From Cyanophora paradoxa CCMP329 (lineage: Eukaryota > Plantae > Glaucophyta): DNA of 64,000 bases. The stretch covers positions 186,001-250,000 of the forward strand of contig QPMI01000469.1 in the NCBI GenBank assembly GCA_004431415.1, in the 5' to 3' direction. The notes under the pieces are model-generated. The model was not told where the DNA came from. It made no database searches and saw nothing but the letters and a program-made list of their open reading frames with translations. Below are positions 51,348 to 56,431 of the stretch, in pieces (positions within the stretch are counted from its first letter, which is position 1; every line of letters starts with the position of its first letter). The position numbers and the translations under genes were made by a program.

Positions 51348-52113
51348 ATGGCGGGAGAAGGTGCTCGATACCGCTGCGAAGCCCCGAGCCCTGGGGCGCT
51401 GACGCTCCTGCGCAGGGACGAGAATCGTGCGTCGCCACGAGCGCTGTGGTAGCTACGCTCCGCCGCGCTGATCATAGACCGCAGCTGTCCTCGCTGCCGC
51501 TGCAAATCCTCATCTACTTCAACATCTGGTACGCGTTCATATACTTCTGGCTCAATGTCGCCATCTTCATCTACAAAGGTGAGACACGCCCGCGCTGCGC
51601 CGCCGATGGGCGCTCAGCTGCGGGGCGGCAGGCACCTGGCTGCCCTACCCGCCCAACACGCTCGGGTGGGAGATCGCCTTCATCATCGTATACGCGGTCG
51701 TGGAAAGCTGCAGGTTGTTCTTGGGTGCGACGTCGGCCTCCCTGCCAGGCTGCGCGGCCCGCTGAGGGGCGGCGCAGGTTCAAAAGGGAACAAGACGGAG
51801 CAGGTCCCGCCGATGGTCTGGTTCCTCCTCATCTCCGCAGCGATCGCCTTCGGCAACATCTACTACATCTACCTCCAGATCTACGTGTACGCCGCGCCGA
51901 GCGCCGCTTCTCGCCGTGCGCGGCGCGCCGACCTCGGGCCCCGGCAGGCTCCGGGTGGACGTCGTCATCAACGCCATCCACCTCTTCTTCGTCGGCTCGG
52001 AGGTCATCTTCGCGATATTCACCACGCTGACCTTCCAGGTCCGCCCCGCCCGCCCCCGCCGCCCCCGCCCCTCTAACCCCGCCCCCTCCCAGCGCTACCG
52101 TCTCTTCGTATAG
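51348..52113 (+). CDS. TMEM216: Ciliary transition-zone membrane protein (Transmemb_17 family, TMEM216-like)
   Basis: LSSLPLQILIYFNIWY..IFIYK|GTWLPYP..WEIAFIIVYAVVESCRLFL|GSKGNKTE..YLQIYV|LRVDVVINAI. Confidence 0.88.
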
Positions 52114-52374
52114 CTGTAGGCCGCCTCCCCCGCCACCGCACCCCTCCTCGGTCCCGCATTTTATCCCCGAGCCCGCGGCCCGCTTCCTCGCCCCTCCTGC
52201 AGGTCGATGCCGCGCGCTCTCTCCCTGCGAGCTCGCCGCGCTCCCGGGGGCCCTCGCCCCGCACCCGTCCCCGCGCCCCTCGCCCCCGGCCGCCCCGTCC
52301 ACGATCGCTCTCTGTTCCATAGGAGCGCACGTAAGAGGGCCTTGGCGAGGCGGGCGGGGGCGGGGGCCGCGGCG

Positions 52375-54392
52375 CTACTTGGCGGGGGCGAGGCTGGGGC
52401 TCGCGTGCTCGCCGGTCGTGCAGCCGGGCGCCTCGAGGCTCGGGCACTTCTTCTTGCACGCCAGCGGCTTCCCCTTCGTGCCCCCCGTCGTCGGGTGGTA
52501 CCGGCACACCCCCGGCGCGAGCTTGTCGAAGTACTGCCCCCGCGTCAATCGCAACCGCCGCGCGGGGGCGGGGGCGGCCCCGCGGGGTCTCCGGGGGCGG
52601 ACCTGCCCGCAGCCGGCGTTGGTGCAGAGGTAGGCGGGGCGGGCGATCTGGCGGGGCGGGGCGGTGGTGGGTGTGCGGGCGGGGCGGGGAGGAGGGGGGA
52701 GGAGGGGGCGGCGCACGAGGATGCGCTGGCCGACCTGGAGGAGTATGCCGTTCCCGTCGCTCGAGTGCGGCAGCACCTCCGCGAACGCCGGCATGCACCC
52801 CGCGCTCCCGCACCCCGCCCCCTGCACCCGCCCCTCGTTGCCGCCCCGCAGCTCCCGGATCGGCAGCACGACGCCCCGCCCCGCCGTGCGCGGCGTCAGG
52901 GCCCCCTCGGGGGCGCCCGCCGGCGACCGCGGCGCCGTCGGGCTCGTCGTGCCTGCGCCCCGCGACGGCTCGCGGCGGCGGCGGCCGGGAGGGGCCGGGG
53001 CGGCGGGGTGCTCGGGTGGAGGGGAGGGGGCGGAGAGGGCGCGGGAGGGCCCCGCGGGGAGGCGGGGCGTCGCAGAGGCGGGCGGCGAGGCGGGCGGAGT
53101 GGTGGGGGCAGGCGCATCTCGGACGTGAGGAAGTCGGGAGGCGGGGCGGGCATGGCGGCGAGGTCGGCGAGGCGGACGTCGGCGGCGGCGAAGGCGGCCG
53201 CGTGGCCCTCCAGCCCGCCTCCTCCAGCACCCGCAGCAGCGCCCCTCGCACCCGGCCCCGCCCGCGGCGTCTGCCGCGCCGGCGAGGCCACCCGGCGCCC
53301 CGGCGAGGGCCCCGCCGGCAGAAGCCCGTTGCCCACGGAGGAGAGCAGTCTGAGGATCTCCTCCTCGCCCCCGCCGGCCGCGCCGCCGGGGCCGGGCGGG
53401 GGCGGGGCCGCCGAAGCCGCGAAGATGCTCTGGAAGACGCCGACCTCGCCGGCCTTGGCCTGCTCCTGCACCCGCAGCAGCACCGACGGCAGCGGCGGCG
53501 GCCTCACCACCGGCCCCCGCCCCCCGCCGACGGCCCGCCGCCGCCGGCGCTGGCGTGGGGTGGCGGGAGGGGAGGGCCGGGCGGGGGCGGCGGCTTGGGG
53601 CGGGTGGGCGAGGGGGCCGGCTCGGGGGCGCCGTGGCTGCAGGCGCCGGCGGCGTGGCCGTGGGCGCCGGCGACTTGCTCGAGGGTGAGGACGGAGAGGT
53701 CGAGGGTGAGGCCGGCGACGGCCGCCGAGAGCTTCTTGTCGATCCGCATGAACCGCTCCGCGTACTTGCCCGCCTGCAGGATCCGCATCACGCCGCTGAA
53801 GAAACTCGCCGTCGCGTAGTCCTCGATCAGGGACACCTGGCGGGTAGCGACCAGAAATGATCAGACGGTGAGTCTGGGGTCGAGATACGACACACCCCGT
53901 CCGCAATCAGGCCCTCAAGATCCTTCAGCGCTTTGCTTGAATACCTGTGGGGGGTGGGCCTCAGCGCTTTGTACCCGCAGAGCTCAGAGACGCCGCTGAG
54001 GGGGCGGGGGCCTCTGAGACGCCGGCGCGGGGCGGCGCGGGCGGCGGCGCACGTGAACGTGCTCCTGCTGTTCGTGGACGCCGCATAAATGCGCTCCAGC
54101 GTCTCCTGCAGGCTTTGGAAGCGCGCCGCGAGGTAGCCGAAGTCCTGCGACGAAATCAGCGCAGCAGGACAGCACGTGTACAGTCTGGGCAGCGACAGCA
54201 GGTAGGTTTTGCCTGTGGCCTATAGTATACCACACATACCTCCTGGTTCTCCGTGGCTGTCCCTGCTTGCTCCACGACCCACTTCACACCTGCCAACGCG
54301 TTCAGGGGCTCGGCCGCGGGCGGGGTTGCAGGCGACGCCCGTGCACCTGTGATCACATGGCCCAAGGACGCTTTCGCGTCCTCCCACACCAT
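52375..54392 (-). CDS. MLKL-like N-terminal four-helix bundle + SAM-like + CHORD-like zinc-binding domain protein
   Basis: Spliced N-terminus MVWEDAKASLGHVITGVKWVVEQAGTATENQEDFGYLAARFQSLQETLERI..ALKDLEGLIADGVSLIEDY..RILQAGKYAERFMRIDKKLSAAVAGLTLDLSV. SAM-like LLRVLEEAGLEGHAAAFAAADVRLADLAAM..FLTSEMRL needs one extra G near 53214. C-terminal CTNAGCGQ|YFDKLAPGVCRYHP..CKKKC..PGCTTGEH. Confidence 0.7.
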
Positions 54393-54682
54393 CGCCGATG
54401 CAGCGTCGACCCCCCTTCAAACTGAGCAGCAGCGCCCGGCGATGAAACGCCCACGAAGCAGTTTCCAGTTCAGTTACGTCAGATGAGGCCAGACCGCGTC
54501 GACCAGTCGGACTATCTAGCTGCGCTCTCCCTTTGCCGCCGCGCTTGCCAGAGCTTCGCGGGAGAGCGGCTCAAGTTCTGCCGTTCGAGGGGGGTAGAGA
54601 AGACAACCGGTCGGCCACCCAGTTGCAGCTGCGGACGTTAGACTGCTCGATCACTCGACAAGTGCGAGCAGCCGCTGAGCAG

Positions 54683-56431
54683 ATGGCGTTCGCAGCGCCC
54701 TTGGCAACACGTGCGAGCAGCTGCAGCGAGCAGCAGAATGCAGGCTCATGCGGCTTCAAAGGAGCGGCGAGCGCCATCATCTGTGCAAGCGCGGTCGCCG
54801 CACAGCGCTGCAGCTGCTCAGTCGCAAGACCACGCGCGCCGCGGCTGACATGCACCTTCTTGGTTCGGCGCCGGTGGCTCGCAGCGTCGCAACGTGTCGT
54901 ACCAGCTCCGCTAGTCGCGGGCTCCAGGCCGCTCGCGCTGGCCGACGGGAGCGGCGGCGGCGGCGGCGGCGGCGGCGAAGTCGACGGCCTCTGGGAAGAG
55001 CTCGAAAGCGGCGCGGGCGTCGACGCGTGGAGCGAGGAGGAGCTCGAGGGCTACGCGGGGGCGGAGGACGCTCCGGGCCGCGCGCGCGCGGCGGCGGCGG
55101 CGAAGGTCGCGGCGCACGCGCACGAGAGCGAGGAGGAGCGGAGGACGCGGCTGCTCATCGAACGCGTTCGAGGTGCGCCATCGCCCCGCGGCCCCAGCTC
55201 TGCATGCGAGAGCGGCAAAGCTGACTCGTCTCCCAGCGGAGGCGACCCCGGCGGCGGCTGTGCTGCCGCCGGCGCCGGCCGCGGCGCGGCGGGGCCGGCG
55301 GCGGGGCAGCGGGGAAGGCGGCGGGGCGGGGCGGGGCAACCGGGTGCTGTCGCGGGAGAAGCTGTTGCGGGGGATGACGGGCGGGGAGGAGGAGCGGGAG
55401 GCGGTGGCGCGGGGGATTGACCTCGCGGACCGCGCGCTGGCGACGTGGAGCACGCAGCTCTCCGACTTCCTCTCCCCCTCCGAGGCCGCCGCCGTGCAGC
55501 GCACCCTCGCGCCCCTCGCCGGCCTGCAGCTGCTCCCCTGGGGCGGCTACCCCCTCGCCGAGCGCTGCCGCCTCGCCTTCGCCCGCGCCGACGCCGCGCC
55601 CCTCGAGGCCGCCGACGTGCGCGCCCCGCCCCCGGCCCCGGCCGCTCCCGGTGGCAGATCTGGAGGGGGGTCTCGGGGCAGGTGCCGGTGGCGCTGGTGA
55701 ACGTGTCGGGCAACTTCCTGTTCGACGCGGCCGGCCACGGCGACTTCCTCGGGGCCGCCCTCGGCGCCACCGGCCTCTCCCGCGCCAAGATCGGTGCGCC
55801 GGCCCCGCCGCGGGGGCGGGGCCACGGGGCCTCACGGGGTGGCAGGGGACGTGGTGGTGCAGGGGGAGGCGGGGGCGCAGCTCCTCTGCCACCCCGACGT
55901 CGCCCACGTCCTCGAGGCCTCCCTCACCCAGGCCCGCCCCCGCCCCGCCCCCGCCCCCCCCCGCCGCGCTCGAGGCGGCGGGGGCAGGTGAGGACGGTCC
56001 CGGTGCGGACGACGAGGGCCGAGCTCTCGGAGCTGCGCCAGCGGGAGGTCACCTGCAAGGCGCGGCGCCCGCCCCGCCGCGCAGCGGCGCGGGGGCGAGG
56101 CGGGGCGCGGGGCGCAGGAGGTGCAGACCGTGGAGGCCTCCCTCCGCCTCGACGCAGTCGCATCCGCCGGCTTCCGCCTCTCCCGCTCCAAGATGGCCGG
56201 CCCGCCCGCCCCCGCCCTCGTCCCCGCGCGGGGCGTGAGGCGGGGGCGGGCGGGGCAGGCCTGATCTCGTCGGGGGAGGTGAAGGTGAACTGGGCGGCCG
56301 TCAGCAAGGAGAGCAAGGAGGTCAAGGCGGGGGACACGATCGCCCTGCGCGGGCGCGGCCGGCTCGAGGTGCTCGCCGTCGCCCCCACCAAGAGCGGCAG
56401 GTTCCGAGTCCACCTCCGCCTCCTCAAGTGA
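54683..56431 (+). CDS. Photosystem II S4-domain protein (Sll1252/YlmH family), plastid-targeted
   Basis: Transit peptide MAFAAPLATRASS..; SDFLSP..WGGYPLAERCRL..GNFLFDAAGHGDFLGA..KIGDVVVQGE..EASLRLDAVASAGFRLSRSKM..VKVNW..VKAGDTIALRGRGRLEV. Confidence 0.9.

Follow-up and report, generated by a model that had tools for sequence, protein, structure and literature searches.

A predicted four-helix-bundle protein of the MLKL_N family with SAM-like and CHORD-like segments in Cyanophora paradoxa

Regulated cell death in animals, fungi, and plants has a membrane-attacking part in common, the MLKL/HeLo/RPW8 four-helix bundle (4HB). In fungal HeLo and HELL proteins of the HET-S type, the helical membrane-attacking domain is switched on by the self-assembly of a C-terminal partner; in SARM1, SAM-type oligomerization presents the executor domain, a TIR NADase; and CHORDs of the RAR1 type chaperone nucleotide-binding leucine-rich repeat proteins (NLRs). 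The gene described here lies on the minus strand of a 64,000-nucleotide stretch of Cyanophora paradoxa CCMP329 (contig QPMI01000469.1, positions 186,001 to 250,000; G+C content, 70%), hereafter the window, in which it occupies positions 52375-54392. The locus is very probably a single transcribed nuclear gene of seven coding exons whose product, about 524 amino acids (aa) long, combines a 4HB with proline-rich linkers, a SAM-like segment, and a CHORD-like module, the breaks in its reading frame being homopolymer deletions of the PacBio assembly. The effector family is known and the domain architecture is new; as an initial annotation made from the sequence alone had supposed, the combination has not been described in the literature, where no paper connecting domains of the MLKL type to CHORD, to SAM, or to Cyanophora was found.

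The coordinates of the initial annotation are right, the ATG lying at 54392 and the TAG stop at 52377-52375, and the four GT-AG introns that it had predicted are borne out by contigs of runs X1, X2, and X3, which come from two studies (P1 and P2) and are labelled probable RNA. Excision of 54346-54290, 54239-54145, 54052-53945, and 53895-53837 (57, 95, 108, and 59 nucleotides (nt), all GT-AG) leaves five exons in frame, the product of which begins MVWEDAKASLGHVIT, and exactly these joints occur in the contigs of the three runs; the predicted model, checked against this RNA-derived material, is spliced and transcribed. The same contigs add two GT-AG introns (52716-52648 and 52602-52534, 69 nt each) on either side of a 45-nt micro-exon. 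A contig of the 2012 run X11 is colinear with the window over 53820-54900, the four 5′ introns not being spliced out there; X11 is therefore DNA, and X1, X2, and X3 are derived from complementary DNA. As the run contigs differ from the window by zero substitutions, the runs are apparently from the same strain. Exon 5, which encodes two linkers (the first proline-rich) besides the end of the 4HB, a short helical stretch, and the SAM-like segment, is covered among the RNA contigs listed over 53602-53832, 53064-53518, and 52717-52916. The parts of the transcript are as follows.

54393-54576, minus strand: 5′ untranslated region, about 184 nt, without an upstream ATG (ends of RNA contigs X1 record 4, at 54576, and X3 record 21, at 54573)
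54347-54392, minus strand: coding part of exon 1, ATG at 54392 (joint 54286 to 54344, cut +3, in X1, X2, and X3)
54290-54346, minus strand: intron 1, 57 nt, GT-AG (joint seen in X1, X2, and X3 and not in X11 DNA; splice sites)
54240-54289, minus strand: exon 2 (RNA contigs)
54145-54239, minus strand: intron 2, 95 nt, GT-AG (RNA contigs, splice sites)
54053-54144, minus strand: exon 3 (RNA contigs)
53945-54052, minus strand: intron 3, 108 nt, GT-AG (RNA contigs, splice sites)
53896-53944, minus strand: exon 4 (RNA contigs)
53837-53895, minus strand: intron 4, 59 nt, GT-AG (RNA contigs, splice sites)
52717-53836, minus strand: exon 5, long (RNA contigs and G+C at third codon positions (GC3); its frame changes in the window come from homopolymer deletions)
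52648-52716, minus strand: intron 5, 69 nt, GT-AG (RNA contig pieces 52717-52916, 45 letters, and 52321-52533; splice sites)
52603-52647, minus strand: micro-exon 6, 45 nt, in which the zinc module has its first two Cys (RNA contigs)
52534-52602, minus strand: intron 6, 69 nt, GT-AG (joint 52533 to 52603 in X1, X2, and X3; splice sites)
52375-52533, minus strand: last coding exon, stop TAG at 52377-52375 (RNA contigs)

The first domain of the product is its N-terminal bundle.

53699-54362, minus strand: MLKL_N-family 4HB, residues 11-125, with introns 1-4 inside (Pfam PF22215, AlphaFold2 (AF2), Foldseek, VIA, language-model features)

From its sequence profile, the N-terminal stretch of about 125 aa very likely belongs to the MLKL_N/RPW8-like 4HB family, and the structural comparisons are compatible with this placement and non-discriminating. 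Residues 1-130 match Pfam MLKL_N (PF22215) at 32.2 bits (E = 8.9e-8; cutoff, 27; profile positions 2-111 of 142), so that the resemblance to the MLKL N terminus noticed by eye at the outset exceeds chance; the whole public gene model, described below, also passes the cutoff (28.1 bits), and exon 5 alone gives a weak match (17 bits, E = 0.004). In a language-model feature search, the top ten results are all MLKL_N, MCAfunc, or RPW8 clusters, the best scoring 0.94 with 194 of 256 features in common. The single-sequence AF2 model has the four helices that the proposed fold called for (residues 3-23, 28-58, 66-92, and 105-121; mean predicted local distance difference test (pLDDT), 70.5; predicted template-modeling score, 0.62), and helix 4 carries a basic cluster (R97, K103, R107, R110, K113, and K114). 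When this model was searched with Foldseek, the human MLKL executioner domain ranked first (19% identity over 116 columns, template-modeling score about 0.49, E = 0.17) and the RPW8-like coiled-coil (CC-R) domain of NRG1.1 second, neither match being significant; in VIA-align, run against 48,161 representative chains, 34 chains reached a Z of 8 or more, and 6 of these are from MLKL, NRG1 CC-R, Rx-CC, MLA13, and AtMLKL3, families that are thereby enriched.

These structural figures would also suit a generic helical bundle outside the MLKL/HeLo/RPW8 lineage, for the Foldseek E-value is 0.17, the VIA Z-scores of 10-11 tie with those of sperm microtubule inner proteins, IncA, and designed bundles, no PDB sequence match was obtained, and the ESM Atlas shape search returned unrelated rows only. 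Such a coincidence is nonetheless quite improbable given a Pfam match above the curated cutoff over 115 residues, the match of exon 5 by itself to the same profile, and an independent language-model search whose ten leading clusters all fall within this clan. No kinase family appeared in Pfam scans of the public model and the in-frame window pieces (E up to 10), in keeping with the kinase-free reading offered initially, and the protein very probably has no kinase, NB-ARC, or transmembrane part.

Downstream of the bundle, the reading frame is interrupted in the window. A one-base deletion had been suspected near 53214, and the contigs of all three RNA runs indeed have an extra base behind 53213, which makes that frameshift an assembly error; what had been overlooked were many further missing bases (at least 10) and an in-window stop at 53506-53504. 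Relative to the window, the RNA contigs carry further extra bases behind 53135, 53142, 53147, 53241, 53255, and 53420, two behind 53103 (in X3 only, the sole listed contig that reaches the site), and, from the lengths of contig and window, two more somewhere in 53351-53507. The total is 11 extra letters, nine of them placed at eight sites that each lie inside a run of G or C, so that the window is best described as having homopolymer deletions and the gene as unbroken. With the insertions added, the reading has no break between LLSSVGNG and a point past 53060, the SAM-like part included. The genome assembly was produced from PacBio RSII data with Canu and polished with Quiver and Illumina reads (PMC6704402), and the depth of X11 is zero over 53213-53313, which would explain why short-read correction is missing there. 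As a separate observation, an X11 DNA contig with a depth of 20.6 lies over 53135-53147 and lacks the three G's that the RNA contigs add there; this is probably a brief match of DNA from some other GC-rich locus, and the three insertions concerned (53135, 53142, and 53147) are together frame-preserving.

53504-53506, minus strand: TGA, probably a false stop, in the frame of exon 5 (GC3 switches here from frame A to frame B, the coding signal being kept)

Two frame changes in exon 5, from A to B within 53519-53601 and from A to C within 52917-53063, are those that we infer, as none of the contigs listed spans either interval; runs of at least four G or C number five in the first and eight in the second. 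A GC3 of 0.93-1.0 passes between the frames free of gaps (A to about 53570, followed by B, short stretches of C and A, B once more, A, and, from about 52940, C), which is the pattern expected of one open reading frame (ORF) read across deletions. The frame track shows a single ORF of about 524 aa. In the real mRNA, the TGA at 53506-53504 most likely falls outside the reading frame, as it would with one base missing from 53519-53601. An intron beginning at GTGAGG (53507) and bypassing the stop was considered and ruled out, the RNA contigs being colinear through 53504-53518. In the second interval, a non-canonical 85-nt joint (52989 to 53075, TG..CT on the minus strand) occurs in contigs of X1 and X2. 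It would yield exactly the A-to-C change required there; just 23 letters stand on one side of it, the contig depth is above that of the rest of the gene, and an X3 contig is colinear past 53075. A repeat artefact, a duplication in the assembly, and an alternative form are all candidate sources of the joint.

Taken at face value, the window would instead hold two genes or a decaying one, that is, a 189-aa protein consisting of the 4HB only and ending at TGA 53506-53504, with the remainder a separate or non-coding transcript. The in-frame stop is the obvious ground for such a division, together with the lack, among the contigs listed, of one that bridges 53519-53601 or 52917-53063 and with the X11 contig mentioned above, which lacks the extra bases over 53135-53147 and may be from another locus. 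This division is very unlikely, since the high GC3 carries on in the shifted frames, the 11 extra letters of the RNA contigs restore reading through the SAM-like segment, and the sequence is otherwise identical, with zero substitutions; moreover, a second gene is made less likely by the absence of an ATG from frame B ahead of the SAM-like part.

On the reading of the locus as one gene, the restored frame contains the second candidate domain.

53060-53246, minus strand: SAM-like segment, about 62 aa (insertions behind 53241, 53213, 53147, 53142, 53135, and 53103; pattern by eye)

The segment is unbroken only after the RNA-supported insertions, and the corrected sequence displays five helix-like stretches and a SAM-like hydrophobic pattern, judged by eye; on that pattern a SAM assignment is somewhat more likely than not. 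Its 37-aa in-frame piece (53103-53213, minus strand) gave no Pfam or PDB match, and Pfam was likewise blank for the pre-zinc exon and for the helical piece in the middle.

The public gene model, Cyanophora paradoxa tig00020780_g13805.t1 (EukProt P014314, 456 aa), lacks this segment. Its residues 1-127 and 330-456 are identical to the RNA-confirmed product, whereas those numbered 128 to about 172 and about 263 to 329 come from other frames, which the model enters through introns not seen in the RNA contigs; the model thereby dodges the frameshifts, and the SAM-like segment is lost. For intron 5 it uses the donor at 52716 that the RNA contigs support. The 456-aa model is very probably wrong in the middle, and the real protein should have about 524 aa. 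This model was the one true match in an exhaustive search of 1.84 billion representative proteins with 66 aa of exon 5, the second match being a spurious, repetitive protein of 1033 aa (8 stretches). No homologue of the same architecture emerged from that search or from word-index searches, which gave the gene itself only, within the limits set by query length and word sharing, and tblastn detected no paralogue in the window.

The last exons encode a cysteine- and histidine-rich module at the C terminus.

52405-52626, minus strand: compact CHORD-like Cys6His2 module, public-model residues 397-447, with intron 6 inside (motif, Pfam CHORD, PDB, feature search)

Mammalian MLKL oligomerization requires HSP90 (PMC4816171). 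The initial annotation, which noted a C-terminal motif resembling a compact CHORD, had proposed a "chaperone-gated" protein. The spacing reported there is exact: residues 397-447 read C-x4-C-x11-C-x2-H-x12-C-x3-C-x7-C-x4-H, with six Cys and two His. The resemblance to CHORD likewise holds, this being the closest family in each comparison. Pfam CHORD (PF04968) aligns over profile positions 2-63 of 63 and scores 16.9 bits (E = 0.01), under the cutoff of 24.6; the best PDB sequence matches are CHORDC1 (2yrt_A, E = 3e-4) and RAR1 (2xcm_E, CHORD-II, E = 0.01); and CHORD clusters head the feature search with a score of 0.87. An earlier reading of the last exon as a Btk motif (BMX 2ys2, E = 0.4) is superseded by the alignment of the full module to CHORD. 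The invariant CHORD zinc ligands are C159, C164, C178, H181, C196, C197, C213, and H218 in RAR1, in which an invariant His188/Asp(Glu)189 loop touches HSP90-bound Mg-ADP (PMC2935968). Seven of the eight ligands align in the Cyanophora module, the first Cys of the adjacent pair being Ala and an extra Cys lying four residues on. The His188/Asp189 loop is missing, with a gap relative to 2yrt and 2xcm and no His, Asp, or Glu among the 12 residues from His to Cys. Known CHORDs are paired, and a second module was found neither in the public model nor in the window. The fold model of the C terminus is of low confidence (pLDDT 55.7), and Foldseek returned no match on this low-confidence model.

From its sequence, then, the zinc module is CHORD-like and perhaps CHORD-derived; several of the properties by which a CHORD is recognized are absent, and HSP90 binding should not be assumed. 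The HSP90 requirement of MLKL and the chaperoning role of RAR1-type CHORDs make the fusion suggestive, and the missing HSP90-contact loop weakens the link; the chaperone-gating proposal loses ground with a module that is single, below the Pfam cutoff, and devoid of the His-Asp loop. Just upstream of the module stands a second C-x4-C with a His nine residues on (public-model residues 358-373, about 52698-52745, minus strand), which could be the remnant of a first half-CHORD or another zinc site.

The neighboring genes are of ordinary character. The convergent neighbor is a TMEM17-like membrane protein (51555-52113, plus strand; Pfam Transmemb_17, E = 5.8e-8; stop at 52111-52113), which has an RNA-confirmed GT-AG intron of 54 nt (52039-52092). 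RNA contig X2 record 14 extends from this gene to the final exons of the MLKL-like one; the 3′ ends of both therefore abut or overlap within about 260 nt. The divergent neighbor encodes an S4-domain protein; transcript contigs stop at about 54576 for the MLKL-like gene and start at about 54609-54624 for the S4-domain gene, and a very short bidirectional promoter region seems to serve both.

As to function, the explanation of the locus that we favor, with about an even chance when taken as a whole, joins the anatomy above (one gene for a 4HB, SAM-like, and CHORD-like protein) to a role as an oligomerization-driven membrane effector. Under this explanation, the SAM-like segment would self-associate and gather several bundles, the basic cluster of helix 4 would contact anionic lipids, and the bundle would open, permeabilizing the membrane or forming a channel in the manner of MLKL, NRG1/ADR1, and fungal HeLo proteins. 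The zinc module would be a protein-binding or a sensor/autoinhibitory end, which is likelier than a canonical HSP90-ADP clamp. This mechanism, that of a kinase-independent, oligomerization-driven membrane effector, is put forward tentatively, at somewhat less than even probability.

Several observations weigh against this reading. The cell-death function is putative, and, as no homologue of the same architecture was found, conservation cannot support it. Unrelated helical bundles reach the same VIA Z-scores as the MLKL-type chains (8-11), Foldseek gives an E-value of 0.17, and phmmer searches of the PDB returned no MLKL (a chance proteasome alpha-4 match for exon 5 and a chance enolase match for residues 1-130). 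The SAM assignment depends on a pattern judged by eye, the two frame changes at 53519-53601 and 52917-53063 are predicted from the frame track, and the flanking genes are housekeeping genes with no immune-type cluster. The bundle is acidic overall, with an isoelectric point (pI) of 5.1, and the human MLKL 4HB is basic. Finally, the feature-space neighbors of the 4HB include the non-death families MCAfunc and DUF7792, by reason of which a non-death role is possible.

The last points lead to the most serious alternative, in which a protein of the same architecture is a non-lytic, membrane-associated adaptor or regulator, its 4HB binding lipid or protein as in plant MCA and MLKL_N/DUF7792 proteins while the SAM-like and zinc parts assemble a signaling or trafficking complex. 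We consider this a real possibility of roughly one in three or slightly better. The MCAfunc and DUF7792 clusters among the feature neighbors, the acidic pI of 5.1, the housekeeping neighbor genes, and the presence of the transcript in the RNA runs examined would all suit an adaptor, as would the non-death endosomal roles of MLKL itself. Conversely, Pfam favors MLKL_N with no MCAfunc or RPW8 match, the protein is without a PLAC8, ARM, or U-box partner domain, and the combination of a basic helix-4 cluster with an oligomerization-type partner suits the logic of an executor. The anatomy fits an oligomerization-armed effector without a kinase and, equally, a non-lytic membrane adaptor.

A bolder version of the effector reading, namely a glaucophyte death or immune executor independent of both kinases and NLRs, in which the bundle is armed by SAM-type polymerization and held or triggered by a minimal CHORD-derived zinc module, is unlikely. 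If it were true, an early-branching member of the Archaeplastida would join in one protein a 4HB executor and a CHORD co-chaperone, which are separate proteins in land plants. The locus would carry the MLKL_N family into the third Archaeplastida lineage and bears on how the bundle was controlled before kinases and NLRs, and a bundle coupled only to self-association and zinc modules would be a minimal testable system. There is also a lesson for the assembly, from which at least 11 bases are missing in G/C homopolymers within about 400 nt (53103-53507), and probably more in 53519-53601 and 52917-53063; other very GC-rich Cyanophora genes may be mis-modelled likewise, with domain content lost.

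Among known systems, MLKL (the vertebrate protein, AtMLKL1-3, and wheat Pm13) shares with the Cyanophora protein an N-terminal MLKL_N 4HB, mouse MLKL superposing with a Z of 10.9 and a root-mean-square deviation of 2.5 over 97 residues. The Cyanophora protein differs in having no brace-plus-pseudokinase, in its acidic bundle, and in its SAM-like and zinc-module partners, and for these reasons it is not an MLKL orthologue. Proteins with an RPW8-like CC-R (NRG1/ADR1 and RPW8/HR) belong to the same fold class (NRG1.1 CC-R, Z of 10.3-11.4), and, according to its entry title, the NRG1.1 crystal mutant carries changes at K94-K110, where helix 4 of the Cyanophora protein has its basic cluster; unlike the helper NLRs, the latter lacks an NB-ARC and leucine-rich repeats and has no Pfam RPW8 match. 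MCA1/2 and the MLKL_N/MCAfunc/DUF7792 proteins are the nearest neighbors of the bundle in language-model feature space, from which the Cyanophora protein is set apart by the absence of PLAC8, ARM, or other partner domains and of an MCAfunc Pfam match.

The CHORD proteins (RAR1, CHP-1/CHORDC1, and melusin) provide the comparison for the C terminus: CHORDC1 and RAR1 CHORD-II align with the module at its start (C-x-N-x-G-C-G-Q-x-F-D...C-x-Y-H-P) and again at its end (G-C-T-x-G-x-H), and, like a CHORD, the module has eight candidate zinc ligands. Unlike those proteins, it is single, about nine residues shorter, has Ala-Cys and C-x3-C in place of Cys-Cys, and is not accompanied by a CS domain. With SARM1 only the logic is shared; the effector in Cyanophora would be a 4HB, and the SAM assignment is putative. 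The likeness to fungal HeLo and HELL proteins is one of concept, in which the trigger here would be the SAM-like or the zinc module rather than an amyloid prion-forming motif.

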